A stretch of 64,000 nucleotides of DNA. Source: Zygnema circumcarinatum SAG 698-1b. Taxonomy: Eukaryota; Plantae; Zygnematophyceae. Of the stretch, positions 2 to 49,719 are shown one piece after another. Below the pieces are notes generated by a model that did not search any database, was not told the origin of the DNA, and was given only the letters and a program-made list of their open reading frames with translations. The stretch is taken from NCBI GenBank assembly GCA_037447605.1, contig CM074814.1, positions 496,001-560,000 on the forward strand, in the 5' to 3' direction. Each line of letters starts with the position of its first letter. The stretch's first letter is position 1. A program made the translations under genes and the position numbers.

Positions 2-1423
2 GGTTTCGCCACCTGGCGTTGGAACTGTCGCAACTGACATGTGACTGGCTAGCTCTGACAGAACTGCGGAGTAACTGAAAACGGAGGCATCGACAAGGAC
101 AATGTTGGAGAGCGCGCCAGCTGTCTCAAACCATCCGAAATCAGTAGCGAGCTTCTGGAGGGAGGCGGGAACTGGGGGAGGAGACGTTAGGGTCAACTGA
201 ACGGAGAACAGAACGGAGGCCATAGAACTCGCGAGCGCCTGGTCGATAAGGCAGGCTCTGTTTGGGAGTAGACCCAAGTCTCTCCACGTCAGCCCTACTA
301 ACCCTATTCCGGGAGAGGGTAGAGGGAGGTAGAAAGTGCTGATGGGTAATCTGTAAAGGAGAGAGCAGACTGCCTGTCCTAAGAAGGTGGCTAAAATCAC
401 TCCCACAAGCCCTAAAGGTAGAACAATCCCTCCCCATAGAGCAGCCCCTCCTGATAAAAGAACAGGGTCAGTTCGAAGGAGGGAATTCGCAAATATAATT
501 GTGGCAGAAAGAAATAATAGGAATATAGGGCCCTCTACAACAGGTGACGTCAGCTTTGCATCACGATAGGCCACTGAGCAGACAGGAATCTCGAACTCAT
601 CATCTTCCGCGAGCATCAAAACAAGCTCAGGGAAACGCTCTCTCATCCGTTGATCTAGCTCCTGATATGCACGGTCAGGATCACCCGAAACCTCCCCATA
701 GAACCATCTCTCTCCCTCCATCCCTTCCTTCACAGCTGTCACTGAAAACGGGCTGCCCGAAAAAACTTCCTTTCTAAGCTCCCTCTCTAAAATCCAGTCC
801 ACCCTTTTGGCCTGCGAATTGCAGTCTGAAACTGCATCCCCAAAAAGGTCTCCAAGTTTTGCAAGAAGGAGAGTATGAGAGCGTTCTACCGACCACTCAG
901 TCACCCTCTTCCCATCTACATCATACCAAGGAATAGACTGCAATATGTCGGAATCTGTTATTCCCTGCAAGACTATGGACCCAACTTGCTTCATTACCTC
1001 GTTGAAATCGATATCACCGGCTATGAATGCATCGATTGCATCTGCAAACATCTCCGTATACAGGTCTGCGGGATCTCTATCGGTTTCCATTATCTCGGCC
1101 GCATCATATATGGGTTCTCTCTCACTCCCTCTCTCCCCTTCCTCCTGCTTCGGATTGCTCGCTCCTTCACTCCCTCCTCCCTCCTGAGCCCAAACCCTAA
1201 AATCGGACCCCTCCCTCCTTCGATGCAGGCATCCAATATTCGCAAAGCGATCTATGAATTTCTGATTCTTTTTGGATATCTTGATGGGTTTCTTGATCAG
1301 CATAGACTTCACAGTTCCAGAAGACGAACTTGTAAAGGAATTTCCAACCCTAACTGATGCATGTAGAGGGTCCCATTTGGGAGGACAAGTCACAAGGAGT
1401 GATAAGCGGTCGCATGCTGCCAT
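2..1423 (-). CDS. EGY-like (M50 family) plastid membrane protease homolog with a degenerate zinc site; 3' end runs off the window
   Basis: Hand translation gives a stop-free, intronless frame of 474 codons from ATG 1423 to base 2. It starts with a Ser/Lys/Arg-rich transit-like N-terminus, followed by EGY-like blocks ELRKEVFSGSPFSVTAV, FYGEVSGDPDRAYQELDQRMRERF, TM segments and LLPNRACLIDQALAS (cf. PNRKALFDIA). It is absent from the ORF track, presumably because no stop lies inside the window. Confidence 0.8.
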   Translation of the reverse strand, partial: MAACDRLSLLVTCPPKWDPLHASVRVGNSFTSSSSGTVKSMLIKKPIKISKKNQKFIDRFANIGCLHRRREGSDFRVWAQEGGGSEGASNPKQEEGERGSEREPIYDAAEIMETDRDPADLYTEMFADAIDAFIAGDIDFNEVMKQVGSIVLQGITDSDILQSIPWYDVDGKRVTEWSVERSHTLLLAKLGDLFGDAVSDCNSQAKRVDWILERELRKEVFSGSPFSVTAVKEGMEGERWFYGEVSGDPDRAYQELDQRMRERFPELVLMLAEDDEFEIPVCSVAYRDAKLTSPVVEGPIFLLFLSATIIFANSLLRTDPVLLSGGAALWGGIVLPLGLVGVILATFLGQAVCSLLYRLPISTFYLPLPSPGIGLVGLTWRDLGLLPNRACLIDQALASSMASVLFSVQLTLTSPPPVPASLQKLATDFGWFETAGALSNIVLVDASVFSYSAVLSELASHMSVATVPTPGGET

Positions 1424-3864
1424 GGCTTCTCTCTCCAAAACTCCTTCAATTTAAATCATAATATATTCAGAATATCTTGAAAAGACGAATGTATTGAACT
1501 TGGAACTCAAAGCTTGCTGGGATAGGAAAGGTATCCAAAAGCTGAAGAGCACAGAACAAACACAAACGGTGTGTTCTGAATGAGAAGCCGGAGAGAAATG
1601 TGTTGAAGACGAATATAAACCATGCCAAAGAAAGTCTTTAAAAAAAGGTAAAGAGAAAAGAATAAGAAAACGTGAGACAACGGAAAACAAAGAGAAAGAA
1701 AAATTCTGCTCAGAGAAACGAAAGGTAAAAAATCACAGTCAAGGGAAAGAACATCCATTGAGCAGTGTCGATCACATCATTGAAGGTTGCTAGTAATCTC
1801 TCTCCCAATTCAACCTCTCATGAATGGTTTTCTGTGACAATCCAATCCCAGAATTGACGTCCTTACCATTCCCCGCACACTACTCTCTCCTCCTCACCCT
1901 CTTCAACTCTTACCATCTCCCATTGCTCTGACGCTCCCTTTCTCCCTCCCCCCTTCCCTCCTTTCGTCCTTCCCTCCCTCCCTCTCTGCCTCCCTCCCTC
2001 CCTTCCTCCCTCCCTCCCTGCCTCCCTCCCTCCCTCCTTGACTCCCTCCCTCCCTGCCTCCCTCCCCCCCTCCCATTCCCTTCACCCGTCTATCAGTGAA
2101 CCATCTATCTCTACCACTTCCCCCCCATCTGTACATCTTCTTGTTCCCTCCCCACTACTGTCGCTCCCTCTCCCTCCCTTTCTCCTCCTCCTCTCCTTCC
2201 TGTTCACCACCTTTACTCACGCCTCCGCTGTCTCTCCGCAGCTTCCCACTCCCTCCCTCCCTCTTTCCGCCTCTTCCTCCTCCCTCCCTCCCTCCTCACC
2301 CTGCGCTACTCCCCCCTCACATGCTGTGAACCATTCACAGAATCTGCCCATAATACTTCTCAAATTCTCACAATGTATGTACATCACTTCTATCATATCA
2401 TTTAGGTCCCCATCATCATCATCATCACCATGCATCATCACATACATCAACCATGAGAAGGGAGAGAGCGCGCACCTCAACCCACAAAATTTCAAACCCT
2501 AAATCGGCTCAGCAGAAGAGAAGTCGAAGGAAAACACTAATCCTTAACGTCTCGCCTTCGTCTTTTAAGGAAGCCCAGTTCCATGTGTAAAATTCCGTAA
2601 CAGTTAGCAGTTCTAGCGCAAATTCCCGCTTGAGCGCTCAACAAGAACACGGAACAGCGGTTTCATGAAAAGGAGGTCGAGAGTTCGAGTCTCAGCACCG
2701 TCAACAAAGGATACTTCCATGACCCACAGTTCCCAGTTCCGTAAACTGAGCTTCTAAACTGCTCTCATAAAAATATTCCTCCCCTGAACCCTCGCCACTC
2801 GTGGTTTCATCCAAGCGTTCGAGCGTTCGAGCGTTCCAAGCGTTCGAGCGTTCCAAGCCTTCGAGTCTCAACTTTAGCAAAACCCTAATCTTTTCGAACT
2901 TTATGAAATTAGTCCTCCTCCATTACCGTACAGACTGTACGGTCAATCTATCCAGCAAATGGGGATCTGCCACGTGTAATTTTCAACACGAGACGAGTTC
3001 TGATTAGTAGAGCCCTCCCCCCCTTGTAAGGCCCAAAGGGAGGAGGGCCGAGAGCGAAGCAGGCAGTCCCCCCCCCGTGCTCCCTCTCCCTCCCTCCCTC
3101 CCTCCCTCTCTCCCTCCCTCCCTCCCTCCGCCGTGAGAGCCCGCAGTGGCCTGGGGGGGGCCTGCATCGCGGGGCGCCATTAGTCCACATTCTTCTTATT
3201 TTTTATTCAAATTTGTGAAAAATTATTGCTGGGTGGCAATTTTGGGGTGTTGGGGTTTTGTAAATTTTAGGGTTTGGGTGGTCTGTCGGACAACGGAGCG
3301 CAATTGCGTTCTCAGTTTAGGCTGCAGAGGCGGAGGAGAAGCGGGAGGGGGGGAAGGGGAGAGAGAGGGAGACAGGGAGAGAGAAGGAAAGAGGGCGAGC
3401 TCCAACCTTAGCGAAAGTAAAGCTGTAAATAAGAGAGAGAGAGGGAGAGAAAATTGTACATAAGAGAGAGAGAGAGAGAGAGGAATAAATCGTGACACAG
3501 CTTGTACGAGAGAGGTAAAAAGCGGGAGAGTGAGGAGAGTGTGAACAGATAACGAGAGTACGAGAGAGAAGGACAGAGGAGGGACAAGGACAGAGGGAGA
3601 GAGGGAGAGAGAGAGAGAGAGCGAGCGAGATAGAGAGTGGGAGAGTGACAGAAGGACAGAGGGAGAGTGGGAGGAGAGCGAGCGAGATAGAGAGAGGGAG
3701 AGAGGGCGAGCGCGAGAGCGAGAGAGAAAGAGCGGGGGAGAGAGAGGGAGAGGCAGAGAAGGGGAGAGCGAGCGAGAGAGAGAGAGAGGCGGAGGCAGAG
3801 AGAGGGAGAGCGAGCGAGAGAGAGAGAGGGAGAGAGGGAGAGCGAGCGAGAGTGAGAGAGAGAG

Positions 3865-4909
3865 ATGGCGAGTGCCCGGGCCCAGGTCCCTCTTGTCTGC
3901 CACGGCCACTCCCGCCCGATCGTTGGGCTCTCGTACTCGCCCGTCACAGAGGACGGCTTCTTCCTCATCAGCGCCAGCAAGGGCACGCTCGCAACCCTAA
4001 ATATAGTATAATATAATTAATTAATAATTAATATATGGACGGAATCCTCAACCCTAAAATTTGAACTTGAATTCCAGGCTCCAGGCTCCAGGCTTTAAAT
4101 CTTAAACGTCAACCCTATATGTCCGGAATGCTAAACCTTGAAAGACCATATACCTCTATATTTGAGTAAATTGGAGTCTCTTAATCTTGAAATTTAAATT
4201 GCTAGAAGCGTATAGGAAACTTTGGTGTAGTAAAACCTAAATCATGTTTGCTTGAATCCTGAAAGGTAGACCCTTTTGAGATTAAGCCTTGATTTCTAGT
4301 CCGTACTAAACCGAAAACCCCAGATTTTTGGATCGTATAATTTTGAAATCTGTGGAATTGGCGAGAGCCCAAAAATTTGAAGGTTTTCACCAAACCTTGA
4401 AACACAGGATTGTGAAACACGTAATCCCCATAAGCCCCAATTAAGCTCTTTGAAATCTAGAAATTTCAGATCATATTCTCCTACTCCCAATTCTCAAATT
4501 TAGGGTTTGAATCTAGATATTGAAGGTAGATTCTGCATAGTTTAGGACTTGATTTAGGGTTAAGGAAAACCCTAATTCCAATCAAACTCTCCGAAGGGTT
4601 TTAATTTCATTTTGAGCCCGTTTACCTCTTTCAGAAATAATGCCATTCCTGGATCCAATTCCGGTTCATTATTTGCCATTTATTTTCCCCTCCTTTTTCC
4701 TTTTCTTTGAGATTTTTGTTTTCCTTTGCGCTTACGTTTTCCACATTTCTATGCAGATGGAAAACCGATGCTGCGCAACGGAGAAACTGGCGACTGGATT
4801 GGAACCTTTGAAGGGCACAAAGGAGCGGTGTGGGGGGCCTGCCTCAACACGCCTGCGCTGCTCGCAGCCACTGCCTCAGCAGACTTCAGCGCGTGAGTGT
4901 GGAGAGAGG

Positions 4910-14203: not shown

Positions 14204-14811
14204 ATCCCATTGAAACTCCCCTCAGAGCCCTCTCTCCCACTGCCACTAACCAGCTGAAAGGTGCTTCGCGCCACCGGCGCGAACATGTAGCCATGCGCCG
14301 CCGCCCCCCTCGCATGCATGCATGGTGCATGCGTGCAGCCATGCCATGCCATGTCCATGGCCGCCGCCATCATCATGCGCCATGCCCGGGCCCCATCTCG
14401 GCGCCGCCGCTCCTGTCGGACCTCCGCAGTGACCCGCCGCCTCCTGCAAGGGCAGAGTATTACAAACGGCGCCGCTCGGCCAATGAGGGAAGGGCCGTAA
14501 ATTTTCCGGTGGCTGCCGGCTTTTGTGTCGGTGGCTTCGCCACGTGGGAGATTAACAAAGATCCTTTGCGTCAGCAGACATCGTATCTGATATCTTATCT
14601 TGTAGGTAATTTGTCGCGAAGCGGGAAAGTCTTCAGTTGCGACAAAACATCTGTACGAAGTAAGAGATTCGTTGGATTTTTTGTCTTATTATAACCTTTT
14701 TGATTTCTTACCAATCCGAAGTGGCCACGTGCTGCAATGTATACGTACAGGTCCTTCCAAGCTTGCGAGGCGGGGAACCAGCTGACGCAGGCGGTCAAGG
14801 CCTGGAATAAA

Positions 14812-37468: not shown

Positions 37469-37604
37469 ATGTCGCCACGTGTCCTGCAGCGGTGTCTGCG
37501 GGACCTTTGCGCGCACGGCGGGTGGACGTACGCCATTTTCTGGAGAATAAAGAGGAGGATCATTCCAAGGAGCCTTTCGCAGTAAGATCACCTCACTCTC
37601 TCTT

Positions 37605-37635
<31 letters not shown>

Positions 37636-40600
37636 ACACACTCTCTCTCACACTCTCTCTCGCTCTCTCGCCCTCTCTCTCTCACTCTCACTGTTCCACT
37701 CCCTCTATCAAGGTCCCGCGTACACTCCCACTGCCTCTCTCTCTTTCTTCTCACACACGCATCTTACCTCTCTCTTCTTTTCTTTCACCAGCCTCTCTCT
37801 CTCTTTTCCCCCTCTTTCTGTCCTCTCTCTCTCTGTCCTCTTACTCTCTCTCTTTGTCCACTCTCTCTCTCTCTCCTCTTTCTCTCTCTCTCTGTCCACT
37901 CTCTCTCTGTCCTCTCTCTCTCTCTCTGTCCGCTCTCCCTCTCTCTCTATCCACTTTCTCTCTCGCTCTCTGTCCTCTTTTCTTGGTTCCAATGTTCAAC
38001 CAATGCCTAGCTTTTATTCTCTTTTTTTTTTTGCTTTTGATTTATTTTCGTTTTGCGGACTCTCTCCTCCTCGTCCCTCCCCTCTCGCTGTGTACATAAT
38101 TCCCCTTCCTCACTTGCCCTCTCTTTTCTCTATCACTTGCACTCTCCCACTTCTCTCTCTCACACCACTTCTCGCTGCCTCTCTCTCTCTCTTCCTCTCC
38201 CTCTCTCCTCACTCCTCTCTGTCTCTCTCTCGTTCTCTCCCTCTGCCTCTCTCCTCCCCATTTCCTATCCCTTCCTCTCCCCCTCCCCCCTCTCCCTCCA
38301 CCCACATCAAGATAGAGATTGTGATGCCATTACCTCATGAGGGCATCTCCCATTGTCCGCCCCCTCCTTTCTTTCCCATTCGCTTCCTTAAACCCTCCAC
38401 CTGTTCTATGCCGTCCGTTCCGTTCCACCGTTGCATCTTTTCGATGCACATAGAACCTGACCAAGGTTTCGTTATTTTCTCTCAATGGCAGGTCTTTGGT
38501 GACGAACGGTCGCATCAACCTCCGACCGGAGGATGACAATTGGTCAGTCGATGACTAAGCCTATGACTAAGCCAATGACTAGCGAGAAGACTAATGTGGT
38601 TAAATGGAAAAAAGTAATCAGAAAAGCATGAAGTTGATAGGAAGTTTCGAAGGGGCCCGATTGCTGACGTATATCGCCCGCGTGCTGACGTATGCAGGGT
38701 GCTCGTGTGGGAGGACGGGCACCTCCAGCCGGCGGAGGCCCTCAAGGACATGCAGACGGGGGTGGGGGACTCCATGGATGCGGGGACGGGCATGGACATG
38801 GCCATGGCCATGGCCATGCATGGCCGCGATGGGCATCCGGTGGACTACGACGCGCTGCAGGCCGCCTACCTCAAGCTCTCGTACCAAGTGTACAACTATG
38901 GAGAGGGGTGAGTGGCGCCTCTGATTGTTGTTTAACATGTTCATGGTTGCCATATTCTCATTCTGGAAACGTGTTGTTGTTAGCTTATTAGTTCCTGGTT
39001 GTTACCTAGAGGTGCATGTATGTGTGAGTGTATGTATGTATTCATGTGCTTGGAGTGCATGATGATGCCCATGGGCCATGGCATTGGACCATGATATGGG
39101 GCTGCCATTGGACCATACGCACATCTTAGGGGCGACTTCTGGCTCAACGTGACGTGACGTTACTTCACGTAACGTCACGTCACGCCGGGCGACCGCCCAT
39201 TTGCCCCGGGCAACAAGTGCGCGGGTGGCCACGTGGCGGAGGATGTCGGTCGCAAGGTCCCAAAAGGGCTGACGTCACTGAGCCCGCCACTACCGCCACG
39301 CGCCTGCTGCCACGAACACGTGCGGCGGCGCGCGCTGTCCGTACGCTGTCGTGTCCGTACAATGACCGGCCAAGCAAAGCGAGTGGAGTCAGTGACACGT
39401 GGCATGCTGTTATTGGCGGATGCGCGGTCCTGGAGGGCCTGCGAGGAAAGTGCGCAAATACCACTGGGCGGCGGTCGGCCGCCCGGACGGATTTGCGTCA
39501 TCGGTTGACCGACGTGACGGTCGTAGCGGCGACAAAACGTCGGTGACTTGTCGTTTATTATGTACGAACGTCTCCATCGGTTGAATTTCGTCGGTCAGCG
39601 GGTCGGCGGTCAATGGGAGAGCGGTCGCATCCTTTCAGGGGCGTCGTTTGGTTTGTCGTTTTGTGAGCGCCGGGCCAGTGGTGGACGGTACCAAAAGCGT
39701 AAGTGATAGTGGAGGACTACGTGGCAAGCCCCCAGTCGTCGAAAATTTTATTTTACGGGCAGGTTACAAGAAAAACAATTCTTTGCTTGAAAAAACTAGT
39801 ATTCTAAAGATATTTTTTTCGTTTTAGCTTCTCTTTTGGACCAAAAAAACACCATTTTGAAAATTTTCGGCTGCTGCCAAAGATGGGTTTCGAACATTAC
39901 CATTCTTTTTGTTTTTGAGAGGAAACTCGTCTCAAAAAAAAAAACAAATCGTTCCTAGTTGACTTCTTCGTGAATGCTGACGGATATTTCGTACTGTCAT
40001 TAAGATACGGTAGTTAGCAACGGCTGCTGTATGGTACCAACTTTTGTCGTGAACTAACGGCCAGTTGAAACGTGTCCTCCCGCAAGCAAGTGGCCCTTCG
40101 CTGTTTTGTCGTCGAGTCTCTTAACGATACCACGTGGCGGGAGGTGCTCTTCTAGAGCTTACTTTTGGAAGTCGGCGGAAGTTGGCCGAAGGTCGTTTGC
40201 GCTGACACGTGCCCTTCGGGTGCGCCACGTGGCAGGCTGCTGGGCATGGTCGCCTGCGCGGAGACCCCCGAGTGGACGTTCCGCGACCCGCGCTTGCAGG
40301 CCGCGCACTTCGCGCTGGGGCAGGTGAGGGCATGGCATGGCATGGGGGAGGGATGCGTGCATGCATGCAATGTAAGGATTTAATGGCATACATGCATGCA
40401 TGCAAGGATTTCATGGCTTGCATTCCATGATCCATGCAGCAGGCATGCCTTTTTCCGCACGACATGCAGGGCATGGCATGGCAGGGCATGGCACGGCAAG
40501 GCATGGCATGGCATGGCATGAGGCCATCCCCCTCCCCCTCATTCCTTTTCCTCTTCTAACGCGCACTGTCCACGCTGCCATGGCTGCAGCCGCCCGCCAA

Positions 40601-40693
40601 TTGGAGGCAACACTTTTCCGCCGGCATTGAGGCAAGTCGCGTCCCGCCATGCACCTGCATGCATGCTGCAGCTTGATGAGGGTGTAATGATGG

Positions 40694-40728
<35 letters not shown>

Positions 40729-43700
40729 CATGCATGCGCTGACGGGGCCTGCCCATGCCTGCTGCTGCTGCTGCTGCAGACGATGCTGGCGGTGCCCGTG
40801 GCAGGAGGAGTCGTGCAGTTGGCATCCATCAAACTCGTGAGCATCTTCTTCCTCATCGTTATAATAATGTCAACTGGTAGTGTTTATTGTGCTGGTTTCA
40901 TGTTAACGCTATTGTTGATGTTCAATGTAAACCGATTCTTATGCAACAGTATTCAACTCTCAAATTCGCCATCAAGAAATTTTATTGTTTTCTGTACAAA
41001 TGCTGATTGCTGATAAACAACAAACACATAAGTTTTTTGAAATATTTTTCCTTTGCTTTTTTAATGTCCTCCTTTGCAGATCCTTGAAGATCAGACCACC
41101 ATCAACGACATTCAGCTGCAGTTCGATGCGCTTCAGAAGCTTCCAGGCGTCTTCCTCCCTGACTTCATTCCTGAAAGCAACTCCACCTCCTCCCTCGGAG
41201 CCCGCTCCTTCTCCTCTCCCTCTCCCTCTCTCTCTCCCTCTCCCTCCCTCACCAACTCCGCCGCAACCATGGCTGCCGCAGCCGCCGCCGCAGCCGCATC
41301 CATGGCTTCCTCCCGACCTCCTCCCTCTCCCTCCTACTCCCTCCTCTCACAAATCCACCGCTCTCTCTCCCAACCTCCCTCCCCTCTCTACCACAGAGAG
41401 CCTCCCCCTGTCGGCCCCTCCCCTCTCTCCCTCTCCCACTCCTCCGCCTCTCTCATCGATGGCAACATTTTCCCAACCCATGACTCTCCCTTCTCCTCCG
41501 ACCTCCAAACCCTAGCTGCCATCCTTCGGGGACATGGAAGCGTCGACTTCAACGGAAACGCCAACTGCAACGGAAACGGAAACGGAAACGGAAGGAACGG
41601 ACGCACATGGAACCCCCCTCCCCCTCTCCCTACTCACCAGCTTCTCCGAACTCGCTCTGCTTCCGCGGCCGAACTTTTTGCCTCCGAGGGAAGGAGGGCT
41701 CCTTTCTCTCTCAATGGAGGAATGGGAGTGGGAGGGGGAGTGGGAGGGGGAATGAGAGGGGGATGTCGGTCTCCCTTCTCCTCTCCCGACAGCTGCGTGA
41801 CCTCATCAGCCAATCAGAGCTCGCCACCTGGCAGACATCCGGCTCTAAAGAGACGCCTGGAGGGAGCGGGAGAGGCTCCTCCTCCCGCCATGGCTCCGCA
41901 GGAGGCGGCGAGCATTGCAAAATTAGGGTTAGCCATGGCGCCCTTCTCGGCTTCAGAAGAGGAGCAGAAAGCTGCAGAATTTCAATTCAAACTTCTTTCC
42001 GGGAAATCTGATCCAAATATTTTTTCTGCAGCAGCTGCAGCTAAGCTGGCAGGGCTCTCTCCCACCCGCTCTCCCGGTCGCTCCCACCCTCCCTCTCTCC
42101 CTCCCTCTCTCCCTCCCTCTCTCCCTCCCTCCCGACCGGAGAGCCCCTACAGAGTTGCCATGGCTTCCTCGTCAGACTCCCCTGAAAACGGAGCACGGAA
42201 ACGGCTCGCCATGGAACTGCCGTTGTCGATAACGGAGATGCCGTCCTTCCCGGGCTCTGTGGAGAGCCTATTGGTGGAGAATGGGAGGGAGAGGGAGAGG
42301 GAGAGGGAGAGGGAGAAGGAGAGGGAGAGGGAGAGGGAGAGGGAGGGGTCTCCCAAGGAGGAGGAGTTCGAGGCAGCCATGGCCTTCGCACCAGCAGACG
42401 CTTCGTCTCCTTCTGGGCAACGGAATCCGTTGAACAGAACGGATTCCGTCACCGTTGCACCCGTTTCTGGTACACAGGAGCAGCTTCTGAAGCTCCTTCA
42501 AGTGAGTCTTTACGGAGGGAAGGAGGGAGGTCAACGGATTCCGTTAAATGGAAAAATAACTGAAGAAAAATCGCCTATTGATGACACGGAAAGCCTCCTT
42601 CTTCAGCATCAGCAAGAGCAGATTCAGTCACTGGATGTGAAGGAGGAGGGAGGGAGAGGAGGAGAGAGAGAGGGAGAAACTGCCTCTCCTCCTCTCTCTC
42701 TCTCTCACATTCACCAGCACCTCCAGCTTCCAAGAATCAACACTATTCCTAGCCATACCGCTTCTCCCACAATCTCTAAGGAGGAGAAGGAGCAGGAGAG
42801 AGCCTCCTCTCTCCCACCCTTGGGAGCTCACTCTCCCTCCTCTCCCGCTGACTCCCACTCCTCCCTCCCTTGGTCTCTCTCTCTCGCTCTCTCTCCCACT
42901 TCTTCCGCACCCATTGAAGCTGCTCTCTTAGAGCAATTGAGGAGATTAGAAGACTCTCAGAAAACCGGATTTCTCTCTCCCTCTCAAATAGAAGCACAAG
43001 CTCAGGAATTGCAGGCTCGGGCCGTAGATATGGGGCTCATTTTAGGGTCGGGAGAGGGGAGGGAGAGGGAGGGAGAGAGGGGAGGAGGAGGGAGAGAGGG
43101 AGGAAGAGAGGGAGAGGTGGAGGATATGGCTTGGAGTAACGGAGAGTTGGAAACTCCAATGAAGGGAGAGAGTTCAGTGGAGATGGAGCCTAAGTTTGGG
43201 GATTCGCCAACGGAGGCTCGAGGGGAGGCCGAGAATATGCAGGTGAGGGGAGAGAGAGGGAGAGAGGGAGAGAGGGGAGAGAGAGAGGGAGAGGGTGAGG
43301 GAGAGGGAGAGGGAGAGGGGGAGGGTGGCTCAGTTGTGTTGGAAATTTTGGGAATCAGGAGGGTTTGGTTTGAATGTTTTGGAGGGGGGGGAGACGGAGG
43401 AGAGGGGGTGGGGGAAGAAAAAGGTGGGTGAAAAGGGTGAGAGGTAGAGAGAGGGAAAGAAAGTAGAGGAAAAAGACGAGAAGAGGGAGAGGGGGAGTGA
43501 GATGGAGTGGAAGAGAGAGAGCGAGGGAGTCGGAGAGGGAGTGGGAGAGGGATAGGGTTAGAGGGAAAGACCGAAACAGAGAGAGGAGAGTCTTTCCGCA
43601 AATTGGAAGGAAGCAGCCCCTTGTTCTTCTCCTTTTGTTCTTAAAGTTGGGGGGCTCCATGTGTGTGTGCAGGTCGGAACGGAAGCGTTTAACGGAACAG

Positions 43701-44157
43701 CACGGAACGGCAACTACATGGACGACTTCGACTCGTTTTTCGATGAGCTCGACTTAGGAGTGCCTCTCCCGTCCCCGCGGGAGAGGGGGAGAGAGAGAGA
43801 GAAAGAGGGAGAGAGAGAGGGAGCGGGAGGGGAGAGGCTCTCCCTCAGAGAGCAGATTCAGACTCTGCGGAACATTGTTCCCGGAGCGGCAAATGTAAGT
43901 ATAATAAAACAATTAATAGTTGAACATTTAGTTTCTTTTAAATAACTAAGCTAAGTTTGTAAGAATGCATACGACTGTTTCGTTTTTTGCCCTTCTTTAG
44001 TATTTTGATTCATTAAGTTTGATGTTTTTTTTTTTTTGGTTTTTTTTTTTTTTTCCAGAGCGATTTGGCGGCCCTCCTTCAGCAGACCGTTCAGTACATC
44101 TCTCAGAGGCATCATCACGGAGAGGCCGCCGCCGTTCCGTCCTACGGAACTAGATGA
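37469..44157 (+). CDS. LHW: LONESOME HIGHWAY (LHW)-like protein: N-terminal bHLH-MYC_N (GAF-like) domain plus C-terminal atypical HLH; 8 exons
   Basis: Exons 37469-37581, 38698-38907, 40236-40323, 40590-40631, 40780-40836, 41080-43242, 43673-43894, 44059-44157. Motifs LRDLCAHGGWTYAIFW, VLVWED, YQVYNYGEGLLGMVA, HFSAGIETMLAVPVAGGVVQLAS, IQTLRNIVPGAAN|SDLAALLQQTVQYI. A GTGAGT at 42501 may mark an extra in-frame intron. Confidence 0.85.
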
Positions 44158-47100
44158 TCACATGGAACGGGTCACCGGAAAATTTGAGTGGGTAAGTAAT
44201 GAAAGGAAAAGTGGGATGTGGGTGCAGAGATCTCTCTCTCTCTCTCTCTCTCTTGCGCGCTCTCGCTCTCTCTCTCTCCCTCTCACTTTCTTTCTCTCTC
44301 TCGTATCTCTGTGTCTCTGCCTCTGTCTCTATCTCTCTCTTTCTCTCTTCCTCCCTCTCTGTCTCCCTCTCTCTTTCTCTCTCGCTCTCTCTTTCTCTCC
44401 TTCTCGAACACTAGCTGCCTCTCCCGCTCTCACTCGTCTACTCTCGTACTTTCTATCCCTCTTTCTCTGTCCTCCCACTGTTTTCTGTCTTCCCTCTCTC
44501 TCCCCCACTTCTGTCTCTTTCTCTGTCTCCCTCTCCCTCTACCTCTCCCTCTCCCTCTCCTCTCTCCCTCTCCCACTCCAACTCCCACTCCCACTCCTCT
44601 CCCCTCGTCAATTCAATGCTCCACCTTCCAATTTCTGACGCGCCTCTCTCCTCTTTCCCTCCCTCTCTCCCTCCCTCCCTCCCTCCCTCCTCCCTCTGAC
44701 AGGAACCCCTCAAAAATAAATACCTCCTGCTTCCAAATATTTTGAGGAGCGGAAATATATTTTCTCGGGGAGGACACGATCGCGGCAAAAAAATTTCGAC
44801 CTCGTGACCGCATTTTTCTCACTCTCTCGCATTCTCAAATATAAACTCTGAAATTTCTGCCAAGAGATTACAGTTCAGACTGAAGGGCCTTTACGAGAGA
44901 GAAAGGGGTCCAAAGTAGTAATATTTTTCCCCATTTAGTGACGTTTAGTTCGATTCGTATGGCGGCATTTTTTGGGGGGGGGGGTACCTTATTTATTTAT
45001 TTTGGGTAGCGTTTTGTACAATCTAATGAGGGGTAAAAAATCTCAAAAACAAAAAAAAAACCTGTGTGTCATTTCTTTCGTTCTTTCTTTTCTAAAGCGA
45101 ATTTAGAGGCAGCGTGCAGCGACAAGTAAAGTCAGGCCTTTTTTTTTGGTTTGTGAAACATTGTAAAATTTAAAAAACATTTTTAGTAAAAAATTCTTAA
45201 TTTTTCATTGATGAAGTTGTGCTTGTGCTTGCGCCGCCGATAGGGGCGAAGCGGGAGATGGGTTGTGGGGGCTCCTTTTTCAAGGTTCCCGCTATTTCGT
45301 TTCAAACAGTTCACCTCAGTTGTGGGAGGGCGGCAGCGGGGAGGGAGAGTTAGGGAGAGGGGGAAGGGGAGGGGGAGGGAGAGGGGGAGGGGAAGAGGGG
45401 GAGATGGGGAGAGAGGGNNNNNNNNNNGGAGAGGAGGTGAGGGGGAAAAGGGGTGAGGGGGAGAGGGGGAGAGGGGGAGAGAAGACGAGGGGGAGAGGGG
45501 GAGCGACAAAGAGGGGGAGAGGGGGAGGGAGAGGACGAGGGAGAGGACGAGAGTGTGAGGGAGAGGGAGGGGTTCAACGGGTTCCATGCGATCCGAAAAT
45601 GCTGTACACGCAACCTTAATTAGGGACTCCCCCCCCCCAACGGAACCTCGTGGGACCGCTCCACTCACATGGAAACGCCGTACACCTTATTAAATGTTGT
45701 ACGATACCATCATTACCCTTTTTACATGCCAGTGTGTTTTGTCGTCTTCGTTGAGTTGTCATTTTCGATGTATGTTTTGTCATCTTCCTAGTGTGTTTTG
45801 TCGTCGTCTTTGTGTGTTTTGTCGTCTTAGTTTGTGTTATGTCGTTTTCCTCGCACAGTGAGAATTCAACTGTACCTCCACACGGCATCCGACCGCCTTC
45901 ACAGTATCCATCCGTACAGTTTGTCCTTTATTTTGTAGAGATTTGTCCATACACCATACAGGCTGGCACGCTCCAACCACCGTAACGGTAAAAAGTACAC
46001 TTTTGTGCCACGTGGCGGAACGTCATTGGATTTAACTGACAATGACGGTGGGGACTCATGGGGTTACCCAGTGACCGTACGGACCCTTTGGGAGGGTCAC
46101 GCAGGGACCGCAGAGGCGGTGAGGCGGTACCAATCGTACGGTAAGATCCCGAATTTCAGGGGGCAGGGCGGTAAAGCGACGTACGAATCCGTACAGCGGG
46201 GGGACCAAAAGTGCGCGCCCGTCGGGCCGGGGGGGGGGTGGCTTACAAAGCGAGTACGGTGAGGGAGTGAGGGCGAGAGACGGAGAGGGGGAGGGAAGGG
46301 GAGAAGGGAGAGAGAGAGTGCCAAAAGGGAGAGGGAGAGGGAGAGGGAGGGAGAGATTTAAGGGAAGGAGGGATTTAGAAAGGGAGAAAGAGAAGTGCAA
46401 AGGGAGAGGGAGAGGGAGAGGGAGGGAGAGAGGGAAGGGGAGGAGGGAGGGAGAGAGGGAGAGAGGGGAANNNNNNNNNNAGAGGGAGAGGGAGAGGGAG
46501 AGGGAGAGGGAGAGGGAGAGGGAGGGAGAGAGAGGGGAGGGTAGAAGTGTAGGGGGGCAGTGCGAGAGGGGCAGAGGTGGAGAGGGAGCGAGAGAGGCGG
46601 AGGGAGTGTGAATCATACAGGTGCGGGTGCTTTCTCTCTCTCTTTCCATCTCTGTCTCTCTCTCTCGCTCTCATGCACGCTCTCTCTCTTCCTCTCTATC
46701 TGTACCGCGCGCTCCCTTCTATCCCTCTCAATCCTCCCTCTCCGCTCACCTTTTCGACCCCTTTCCTTCCGCACTCCCACTCGCTCTCCTGTCTCTCTCT
46801 CTCTCTCTTTAGCACTCTCTCTTTCTTTTCAAATTTCCTCGTTTCTTCCTTTTATCTCTCCCTCCTCTCTCCCAACTATCGTTTTTCCTCTCTCTCGCTC
46901 CCGCTTTTTCTACTCTCCTCGCCATCCCATCTCTTGCTCTCTCCACCTCTCCTCTCCCTCTCCCTTTCCTTCTCCCTCTCCCTCTCCCTCTCCCTCTCCC
47001 TCTCCCTCTCCCTTTTTCCGACAGTCTTGACCTCCAACTTTTTGCAATCTCTCAGCTGCAGCTTCATGAATCTTTTCCAATTTCTGTATTTGAATACTCT

Positions 47101-47408
47101 TCATAACTAAATTAAATGAAAAGTATTTGGGAGGGGAAGGGGAAGGGGGAGGGGGAATGAGATGGAAACTTGTGTTCTCTCTCTCCCTATCTCCATCTCT
47201 CTCTCACTCTCGTTCCCCGCTTGCTCTCTGTCATATGCACCACTTTGTCTACCCTTGTCCTTTCTCTTTCCTTCCTTACGTCTCTCTATACCTCTATCAC
47301 TCTCTCTCCCCTCTACCACTACATTTCTCCCTCTCCACTCTCCCCTCCCTCTCCCCTTCGCTGACCCTCCCCTCCCTCCCCCCACCCCCCTCCCCATTTC
47401 ACAGTACC

Positions 47409-47618
47409 ATGTCGGTATATGTATTTTCGCCTTCAAGAAGCCCCCCCACCTAATTCAACACTCTCTACGTCAATCAGTGGCAGTGAGACATTCTTCAGTA
47501 TTGGGAGTGGTAGTGAAGGAGATAACTCAGAGAGGGAGAGAAGGAGGGTTCAATCTACTTCGAGACAAGGAGTCAAAACCAAGGTGGCATTTGGATCGAA
47601 ATTCGACTAATGCGATAA
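47409..47618 (+). promoter_or_regulatory. Cluster of three ATG-initiated upstream ORFs before the short LHW-like gene
   Basis: 47409-47453 (MSVYVFSPSRSPPT*), 47419-47610 (MYFRLQE...63 aa) and 47610-47618 (MR*). All lie after a good acceptor at 47404 and before main ATG 47671. Confidence 0.5.
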
Positions 47619-47670
47619 ATTCGTTTAATCCGATTATTCGATTAATCTGTTTAATTCGACAAATTCGACT

Positions 47671-49719
47671 ATGAATATGGCGCAAATGTATGACCTTACA
47701 TCATCATCTCCTTCAAATCAGGAATTGGGTCGATCTCTCGAGTCTCCTCCTTCGGGGGTTGATTTTGATCACCAATTAATGAGGGATTTCTATGAGCAGG
47801 ATTTTCCGTCTCCGTTACAGTTCCCCCCAACAGGTAGCCTCCGTAGGCGCTCCCTCCAGGAAGACTCCGTTGGTCACTTCATGGAAACAGTTACAACGAG
47901 GATGGCTCCGTTTCAGTTTCCATCACAACTCTCAGTTTCACCACATGGAACGCTCGTGAGAGGAGAGACCCCCACTTTGCCTTCCGTTCCGTTCTACGGA
48001 ACGCTCGGAAGAACTGGGAGTCTCCCAACTCGGTTTCCATGCACAGACTTCGATTTTCCGTTATACGGAACTAGAACCAGTTCCATGTTCCCCCAGACTT
48101 CCCATTCAGGAACAAGCAGCCCCTTTAGTAGTGTTACAGACTGTCACTCCGATCAGAACCTTCTAGAAGGTTCTAGAAGGGAAGATTCTCTCCTCCGTCT
48201 AATCGAACAGAGAGCGCGAATTCAGCAGCTGCAAGGGGACAGGCAGGGGAGGGAGGGTTCAGGAATCAGTAGGGATTTGACGCGGGGTTTAAGGCCGGAG
48301 GGGAGAGGCTTAAACCCTGAACCCTGCCCGCCGAGCCCCTCCCTTTGCTCCCCCTCTCTCGTGAAGAGTGCGAGCGCGGGGAGGCAGTGTGCGACCACTC
48401 TCGACACCATCGCTGCTGCATTGAGGAGGTCGGCAGGGGAGGGAGGGGGGGCGAGAGGAGGTCTAACATTGGTGAGGTTTCCATCCCCCTCCTCTCTCTC
48501 ACCTCCCTCCTACCCCCCCTCCCCCTCCCCCTTCCACCCTGCCCCTCCCCACCTNNNNNNNNNNTTTTTTTTTTTTTTTTTTTTTTTTTTCTTTTTTCCC
48601 TCTTTTTCTCTCTCTCCAGGATGTGTTTCTCCAGGAGGAAACGCCGCCCATTTTGAAGGTCAGAGATGGTCAGTTGAAGAGTTCAGAGACCAGCCCACAG
48701 CAGTTCGTAGTCATAGAGGACGCACATAAGCAAGGAGAGAGGGAGAGGGAGAGCGAGAGGGAGAGATGGAGGGAGAGAGAGTCGGAAAGTGAGGGAGGAC
48801 AACTGAGTGAGCTCTCCGATCTCCCTTCTCCCGGGCTTCCTTCTTCCACATTTCCTCTCCCAAGCCCTTTAGGGACAAGCCTTCATAATATTTTCCGCTC
48901 TAGCCCTCTAAATTTTGAAAATAAGCCGCTGGACAATGTCTCCGTTCCGTTGTCTACACCTGAAGACAGTACCATGGATTGGCAGGCGGAGGGGGAGAGA
49001 GAGAGAGAGAGATTGGCGGAGGGGGAGCTGAGGGAGGACATGAGGATACTCCCCAGTGATGTAGGGGCGGAGAGAGGGAGAGAGACGCAGAAAGAGTGGA
49101 ACAGGGAGAGAGAGAGGGGGAGGGAGACGAACGAGCAGGAGCTTCTTGAGAACGAGGAGGCGGAGAGGGAGAGGGAGTGGGAGATGTTTTTCGCACATGT
49201 GGAGTCGGAGATTGAGGGGCGAGGTACTGATTCTGGGGGAGGCAGAAGCGATGGAGAGGGCTTTCAAAAGTGTCTGCAGGAGCTGAGAGTACTCATTCCG
49301 GGCAGCTCCAAGGTCGGATGGAAAACCCTAAAAAATCTCTCTCCTAAATCCACTCTCTTCCCTCGCTCCTTCCGCTTCTCCCTCCCTCTCTCCTTGCTCT
49401 TCCTTGGCCCTCTCTCTTCTTCTCCCACCCTCGCTCCTTTCTTTGTTCCCTCCTTCCCTCCTTCCTCTTCTCTCTCCTCCCTCCCTCGGTTCTCGTCTTC
49501 CTCCCGCCCTCCCTCCCTTCTTCCACTTTCTCCCCCTCTCGTCCTCTTCTCCCTCCACTCTTCTCTCTCCCTTCCTCTTTTCCTTCAAACTGAAACTGAA
49601 ACTGAAACTACAACGGTGCCCTGCAGTGCCATGTTCCGGAGCTTCTGGAGCGAACCATAACTTATGTTCGCTCTCTCCGTCAGGGAGAGGGGCCTCCCTC
49701 CCTCCCCCCCCGGAACTGA
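47671..49719 (+). CDS. Short LHW-like HLH protein lacking the MYC_N domain; 3 coding exons
   Basis: Exons 47671-48471, 48620-49312, 49627-49719 (all phase 0). It ends FQKCLQELRVLIPGSSK|CHVPELLERTITYVRSLR, matching the LHW-type ELREIVPNGAK|CSIDALLERTI, with the intron at the same loop position as in the upstream gene. Confidence 0.75.

Follow-up and report, generated by a model that had tools for sequence, protein, structure and literature searches.

We examined a 64,000-nucleotide stretch of contig CM074814.1 from the alga Zygnema circumcarinatum SAG 698-1b (the window; positions are counted from its first letter) and found two units on the plus strand that each end in a split helix-loop-helix (HLH). 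These stand about an even chance of being two separate, neighboring genes of the LHW family (subfamily XIII of the basic helix-loop-helix, or bHLH, proteins), one an LHW ortholog (gene 1, 37469-44157) and the other an HLH-only variant acting only through dimerization (gene 2, predicted at 47671-49719). Exon structures, domain content, and HLH subtype can be read from the DNA itself and are described first. An earlier reading of this DNA, here called the original prediction, had described a tandem LHW-like pair born by duplication and truncation, with the second gene led by upstream open reading frames (uORFs) and possibly a precursor of the SAC51/SACL antagonists; its observation was partly confirmed, and its interpretation is partly supported.

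The LHW ortholog

Gene 1 has nine exons, all with consistent phases, and about 1014 codons if its long exon is unbroken by introns; splice sites, phases, and the sequences of relatives together guided the reconstruction. The first exon alone matches the Pfam domain bHLH-MYC_N (PF14215; E 2.6e-6, profile positions 1-24), and an exhaustive phmmer search of 1.8 billion proteins with this exon returned three algal N-terminal fragments (P0001-P0003). P0005, a spliced Trinity transcript of 289 amino acids and a longer cluster mate of P0002, matches PF14215 over its full length (E 1.6e-28). When searched against the window by tblastn, P0005 aligned in order at 37445-37573 (E 1.4e-10), 38699-38908 (E 7.7e-9), 40237-40347, 40587-40649, 40774-40830, and 41074-41319 (E 7.7e-9); nothing else rose above noise, and there was no match at 44.2-49.7 kb. 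As had been predicted, the MYC_N/GAF-like domain is found in gene 1 only, and a hidden set of MYC_N exons for gene 2, looked for by tblastn, was not found. Both P0002 and P0005 are filed in EukProt (EP00475) under the algivorous vampyrellid amoeba Leptophrys vorax; they have a plant-type bHLH-MYC_N domain and are probably transcripts of its prey alga. The same exon series as in gene 1 is present on a genomic Logan contig from another relative (L001).

The N-terminal signatures of gene 1 (LRDLC...WTYAIFW, VWEDGH, HFSAGIE, and GVVQLAS) are LHW-type and not MYC-type (WGDG/VELGS). In the excerpts used of the supplement to a tomato bHLH survey (PMC4312455), passages with WEDG/IWEE and FSAGI all belong to the LHW family (SlbHLH105/107/108, AtbHLH156, OsbHLH150), FSAGI itself occurring in the tomato members SlbHLH107 and SlbHLH108. 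LHW rows in these excerpts read GVVQLGS where MYC-type rows read VELGS; WGDG occurs 27 times and VELGS 18 times, each as a MYC-type motif. At the positions of the DNA-contacting residues H5-E9-R13, gene 1 has E, A, and R in an R/E/G-rich stretch (aligned to the Arabidopsis MYC2-like open reading frame of contig L006), with no canonical basic region. A scan of the whole window for the ACT-like core pattern came up empty, and the gene 1 stop lies 16 codons past helix 2. Charophyte, liverwort, and moss LHW orthologs have GAF-like and bHLH domains and likewise no ACT-like domain (10.1101/650358), so that its absence does not define an algal form of LHW. On its sequence, gene 1 is the alga's LHW ortholog. 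ACT-like exons 3' of either gene were also considered and rejected, given the absence of the core pattern.

The HLH domains of the two genes

The HLH of gene 1 reads LREQIQTLRNIVPGAAN up to its loop intron and SDLAALLQQTVQYISQ from there toward the stop, and that of gene 2 reads LQELRVLIPGSSK and CHVPELLERTITYVRSLRQ on the two sides of its own. Both loop introns are GT-AG introns in phase 0 and fall at the same aligned residue, as the original prediction had it. A two-part HLH pattern applied to all six frames of the window found exactly these two pairs against 0.01 expected in shuffles, a test that is partly circular in that the pattern was written after both sequences had been seen. Helix 1 of gene 1 and helix 1 of gene 2 are reciprocal best non-self matches across the whole window. 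Neither gene has a recognizable basic region, in agreement with the original prediction: compared with the AtMYC2-like reference, gene 2 has no H5-E9-R13 and an acidic/glycine stretch at the basic-region position. On the minus strand, a separate HLH-like match at 14799 lacked coding context and was rejected.

To assign the two HLHs to a subtype, we scored them with BLOSUM62 over 42 ungapped positions, treating the two exon-encoded halves separately and summing them, against five references; motifs were compared in the PMC4312455 supplement, with full tomato, Arabidopsis, and rice bHLH protein sequences, and subtypes follow from scores and motif counts, not from a tree. Gene 2 scores 72 to 74 against the tomato LHW family (15 to 16 identities), 32 against the tomato SAC51 homolog (9/42), 39 against AtMYC2, and 48 against gene 1. 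The corresponding scores of gene 1 are 48 to 54 (tomato LHW family), 45 (tomato SAC51 homolog), and 53 (AtMYC2), its helix-1 part scoring best against tomato LHW (39) and its helix-2 part against MYC2 (25, with 13 to 15 for LHW). In gene 2, K-C opens the loop and LLERTI lies in helix 2 (K-C-x4-LLERTI, reading KCHVPELLERTI). Within the excerpted survey, LLERT is found in only two of the 159 tomato bHLH domains, both LHW-family members, and LLDKTI, LLEKTI, and KCSID are likewise confined to the LHW family; the tomato SAC51 homolog has no intron in the bHLH region (pattern XI), whereas tomato LHW genes have one (pattern IX). Because of these scores and the K-C and LLERTI signatures, the HLH of gene 2 is clearly LHW-type and not SACL-type as judged from its residues, and by the same measure it is closer to land-plant LHW than is gene 1's own HLH.

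These results bear directly on the proposal that gene 2 is an algal ortholog or precursor of SAC51/SACL (subfamily XIV), the LHW-titrating HLH proteins of vascular plants, which we regard as very improbable. The architecture is indeed the same, with an HLH at the extreme C terminus and neither an N-terminal domain nor a basic region (the tomato protein SlbHLH128 ends ...YLRSLKMKAKSLGLDSL), helix 2 of gene 2 ends in YVRSLR, and a SAC51 homolog is known in Marchantia (PMC11020214). The Y-x-[KR]-x-L-[KQR] ending is, however, common to many bHLH subfamilies, the score of gene 2 against the tomato SAC51 homolog is less than half of that against LHW, the tomato SAC51 homolog has no intron in its bHLH region whereas tomato LHW genes have one, and the conserved SACL uORF is reported to be tracheophyte-born (PMC13415961). 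The original prediction of a SACL precursor was not supported at the level of the HLH.

That gene 2 belongs to some other atypical HLH group and lies next to an LHW gene by coincidence is improbable. The likeness between the two HLHs (48) is no greater than that between gene 1 and AtMYC2 (53), loop introns are common among plant bHLH genes in the PMC4312455 excerpts, and we could detect no paralogy outside the 42 HLH residues. K-C-x4-LLERTI is nevertheless confined to the LHW family among the 159 tomato domains in those excerpts, and gene 2 scores about twice as high against LHW as against its other references. Of the proposed LHW-like pair, an LHW-like gene 1 and an LHW-type HLH without an N-terminal domain in gene 2 were borne out.

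With no paralogy detectable beyond the HLH, the predicted tandem duplication and truncation is also unsupported. Comparison of gene 1 with gene 2 outside the HLH by BLASTP, blastn, and tblastx gave no similarity except GA/CT repeats, so that a duplication, if it occurred, is old; a recent tandem duplication was rejected on the blastn and tblastx results between the loci. Two further elements said to be shared did not exceed chance: the internal motif (LQTLAAILRG in gene 1, LDTIAAALRR in gene 2) scores 25, a value reached by 500/500 shuffles (mean best, 31.6), and the acidic-FF pair (DDFDSFFDEL and EWEMFFAHVE) scores below the chance level set by shuffles.

Exon models and sequence context

Exon 1 of gene 1 (37469..37581, + strand) runs from the ATG to the donor CA/GTAAGA; the residues it specifies, MSPRVLQRCLRDLCAHGGWTYAIFWRIKRRIIPRSLS, open the bHLH-MYC_N/GAF-like domain. 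It is followed by a micro-exon (exon 2, 38492..38542, encoding SLVTNGRINLRPEDDNW) with AG/GT borders and consistent phase, which was recognized through P0002/P0005 (...NVPTRGNRIMKRQEDDEW VLMWEDG) and P0001. Exon 3 (38698..38907) encodes VLVWEDGHLQ...LSYQVYNYGEG and corresponds to a P0005 match at E 7.7e-9; exon 4 (40236..40323, encoding LLGMVACAETPEWTFRDPRLQAAHFALGQ) has a weak colinear tblastn match to P0005 141-176, with consistent splice sites and phase. Exons 5 (40590..40631, encoding PPANWRQHFSAGIE) and 6 (40780..40836, encoding TMLAVPVAGGVVQLASIKL) are colinear with P0005 HPPGWDEHFSSGIK and TIAIIPVPGGAIQLGSV, respectively. Intron 5 (40632-40779), which separates them, has a GC donor (GAG/GCAAGT) and an ordinary CAG acceptor. 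A segment at 38324-38465 tried as exon 1 failed the phase check and was rejected.

Exon 7 (41080..43242) completes the N-terminal domain (ILEDQ...LQKLPGVFLPDFIPES; P0005 tblastn E 7.7e-9) and continues into a low-complexity spacer about 700 residues long. Over the final 700 nt of this exon, which may contain further, unseen introns, the sole strong donor in frame is CAG/GTGAGG at 43243. Homologous-protein searches with the long exon, which were swamped by low complexity, and with its conserved start found nothing. Two islands in this exon are conserved with L001 (E 6e-7 and 2.7e-4). In the second of these, positions 41932-42048 of the window align with L001 ~4109-4225 (AMAPFSASEEEQKAAEFQFKLL...AAAAAKL versus AFAPFPTSMEEKVQAEAQFKQL...AAAVKL), and this island, within an otherwise unalignable spacer, may be an unrecognized short linear motif of algal LHW. 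Exon 8 (43673..43894), read directly from the sequence and also found by the pattern scan, encodes the acidic DDFDSFFDEL, an R/E-rich stretch in place of the basic region, and helix 1 (ERLSLREQIQTLRNIVPGAAN); exon 9 (44059..44157) encodes helix 2, a 16-residue tail, and a TGA stop.

The predicted gene 2 consists of three exons with 528 codons, and its introns are all GT-AG and phase 0. Exon 1 (47671..48471, + strand) extends from the ATG over 267 codons to a phase 0 donor (TTG/GTGAGG), is open in nonrepetitive DNA, and has no recognizable domain. Intron 1 (predicted at 48472..48619) begins with the GTGAGG donor, ends in a poly-T/CT tract and CAG, and joins the two open frames of the gene in phase 0; if left unspliced, the frame would close at 48729, before reaching the HLH. 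A scaffold gap at 48555-48564 would, under this model, be intronic. Exon 2 (48620..49312; 231 codons) is E/R-rich and ends in helix 1 (GFQKCLQELRVLIPGSSK) with no basic region before it, and exon 3 (49627..49719) encodes helix 2 with the LHW signature, a 12-residue tail, and a TGA stop. Pfam searches of single open reading frames or exons, in which the half HLH carried by each exon falls short of the length needed to register, gave no match for gene 2 and matched only exon 1 of gene 1 among the exons; a PDB sequence search with single HLH exons found nothing.

Between the genes lies a GA/CT-rich, low-complexity stretch (44158..47670) that contains two scaffold gaps (45418-45427 and 46471-46480) and, before the gene 2 ATG, an AT-rich AATTCGA-like repeat. 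It held no MYC_N-like exon by tblastn, no Rfam family (searched over 44158-46419), and no credible Pfam domain in its open reading frames. Directly 5' of the gene 2 ATG, the AT-rich segment 47590-47668 contains five copies of the AATTCGA-like heptamer, which may be a leader or promoter element. Three upstream ATGs lie within 262 nt of gene 2 (47409, 47419 with 63 codons, and 47610), a count no higher than expected by chance, and the predicted uORF-led state of this gene was not confirmed.

The window is nuclear, eukaryotic DNA with spliceosomal introns, abundant GA/CT microsatellites, and nine scaffold gaps of 10 N each, and the relatives recovered here are consistent with a streptophyte alga as its source. 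Long GA/CT microsatellite-like tracts at 36900-38400, 44200-44700, and 46500-47400 flank and interrupt both genes, and such tracts give rise to many spurious open frames of 100 to 200 codons on both strands. Every scaffold gap inspected sits within a GA/CT tract. Positions 46420-46480 were masked in analyses of the window. The MYC-type reference used above came from a metagenome scan whose sole return was an Arabidopsis MYC2-like contig, L006 (JGI metagenome contig Ga0041059_1004698), with an intronless open reading frame of 623 amino acids at 1143-3014; it served solely as a reference, and its occurrence indicates that plant DNA is present in that metagenome.

Discussion

Several observations weigh against two separate, working LHW-family genes. 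The hallmarks of LHW are divided between the units, gene 1 holding the N-terminal domain and gene 2 the best LHW-type HLH, a pattern that would also arise if one gene had two alternative 3' ends. In such a locus, transcripts starting at 37469 would either end at the first HLH (44157) or splice into the exons of gene 2, and at least one isoform would join the LHW N-terminal domain to the LHW-signature HLH. Because of the divided hallmarks this explanation deserves attention, and it gains from the mostly single-copy state of LHW in charophytes (10.1101/650358), from the position of both units on the same strand 3.5 kb apart, and from a strong donor-like site just past the gene 1 stop. We nonetheless consider it unlikely: the helix-2 exon of gene 1 has an in-frame stop before that donor, another in-frame stop lies 16 codons 5' of the gene 2 ATG in an AT-rich stretch with no polypyrimidine/AG acceptor, and fusing the two units would give a protein of about 1500 residues that contains two HLHs. 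Donor-like sites of this kind in fact occur about 25 to 35 nt past both stops (44192, TGG/GTAAGT; 49742, AAA/GTGAGG), and the stop of gene 2 is closely preceded by a C8 run (from 49704). These sites could reflect introns in the 3' untranslated regions or ends shifted by errors in homopolymer length, and the true 3' ends may differ from those modeled.

A second group of adverse observations concerns the integrity of gene 2, which could be a decaying partial duplicate or an artifact of scaffolding across low-complexity breaks. Its exon 1 has no third-position GC (GC3) bias, unlike the conserved exons of gene 1, a protein search with that exon found no homolog, and Atlas searches gave sub-threshold leads only. 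E/R-rich low complexity makes up much of exon 2, the model spans one scaffold gap, and two more separate it from gene 1, so that the adjacency of the genes rests on the scaffolding. A nonworking gene 2 is still decidedly unlikely in our view: open frames of 267 and 231 codons, the first in nonrepetitive DNA, are expected far less than once in the window, GT-AG sites allow the three exons to be joined in frame, and both helices are intact and keep the LHW signature residues. To these cautions we add that the subtype call for gene 2 comes from 42 residues, five references, and motif counts, which do not amount to a phylogeny, and that RNA-labeled runs made up about 5% of sampled words.

Taken as two genes, the locus would work as follows. 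Gene 1 encodes the LHW protein, in which a long disordered spacer connects the GAF-like/bHLH-MYC_N domain to a C-terminal HLH that lacks a DNA-contacting basic region. Gene 2 is most likely an old LHW-family paralog that kept, or shrank to, the dimerization module, and given its absent GAF-like domain, it would be at most a truncated or variant member of subfamily XIII. Its architecture, an LHW-type HLH at the extreme C terminus with no basic region, is what would be expected of a non-DNA-binding dimerizer, and it most likely acts through HLH dimerization alone. The partner, as for other LHW-type HLHs, would be a TMO5-type (subfamily Vb) bHLH or LHW itself, and gene 2 would then alter how much of the LHW-type complexes forms, or what they consist of, while contributing no N-terminal domain. 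Separate transcripts, expression of gene 2, its dimerization partners, and a role as antagonist or as a "short LHW" are points that we infer. A shortened LHW is not necessarily antagonistic, because partial rescue of lhw is still obtained with an Arabidopsis LHW from which the GAF-like domain and spacer are missing (10.1101/650358). A stronger form of the two-gene reading, in which gene 2 is an expressed, LHW-derived paralog reduced to the dimerization helices and competitively modulating LHW/TMO5-type complexes, and hence an algal counterpart of SACL, independent or ancestral, is possible but doubtful.

LHW/TMO5 together with the antagonist SACL is among the best-understood developmental dosage circuits in plants. 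Published work places LHW in charophytes (mostly single copy, 10.1101/650358) and SACL in bryophytes, and we found no report of an algal SACL in the literature searched. An HLH-only gene with the LHW signature beside an algal LHW would be a concrete candidate for a titrating partner that arose from the activator itself. Helix 2 of the algal LHW has drifted from the land-plant signature and its neighbor has kept it, which bears on the question of which of the two represents the ancestral dimerization surface. If gene 2 does prove to be a competing paralog, the activator/titrator logic of vascular cell proliferation would predate land plants and would have come about by local duplication of LHW. 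We regard the locus as a lead and not a result; the pairing of the two genes is suggestive, and the reading of gene 2 as an antagonist or SACL precursor is speculation.

Among known systems, gene 1 is most readily compared with the LHW proteins of charophytes and bryophytes (subfamily XIII; KnLHW and MpLHW, 10.1101/650358), for which the same arrangement is reported: a GAF-like/bHLH-MYC_N domain separated by a long spacer from an atypical HLH that no ACT-like domain follows. It departs from other LHW proteins in the unusual length of its spacer, about 700 residues, and from land-plant LHW in its helix 2 (SDLAALLQQTVQYI), which lacks the signature K-C-S-I-D-x-LL[ED][RK]TIKHM. For gene 2, the closest parallel is the HLH of angiosperm LHW (SlbHLH105/107/108 and AtbHLH156; PMC4312455), with which it shares a loop opening in K-C, LLERTI, and the helix-1 motif ELR-x-[IL][IV]P, and like which it has an intron somewhere within the HLH coding region; unlike those proteins, it lacks an N-terminal domain, the RPRP[KR]DR pseudo-basic stretch, and an ACT-like domain, and its helix 2 ends in YVRSLR where LHW has HMLFLQ. 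A Klebsormidium nitens subfamily XIII protein, GAQ82294, is likewise, going by its description, the product of a streptophyte-alga LHW-family HLH gene with a noncanonical domain makeup; an ACT-like domain is reported in that protein (PMC10175843), in contrast to gene 2. The HLH proteins of the Id/PRE/KIDARI type resemble gene 2 in having an HLH without a basic region, a build that permits dimerization but not contact with DNA, but they form unrelated subfamilies of small proteins (~90 to 150 residues), whereas gene 2 has about 480 unexplained residues before its HLH.

SACL proteins titrate LHW away from TMO5. They share with gene 2 a short length and a C-terminal HLH that lacks a basic region and is the only domain. 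The HLH of gene 2 is not of the XIV type (e.g., ILQEIIPGGKGKDSMVVIDEAIHYLRSLK), and it has a loop intron that the tomato homolog does not have. The conserved SACL uORF is reported to date from the origin of tracheophytes (PMC13415961), the uORFs of Marchantia are not homologous to it (PMC11020214), and gene 2 offers no basis for claiming one. The LHW-type helices of gene 2 suggest that, if it is a competitor at all, it would compete as a mimic of LHW and not as a binder of LHW.

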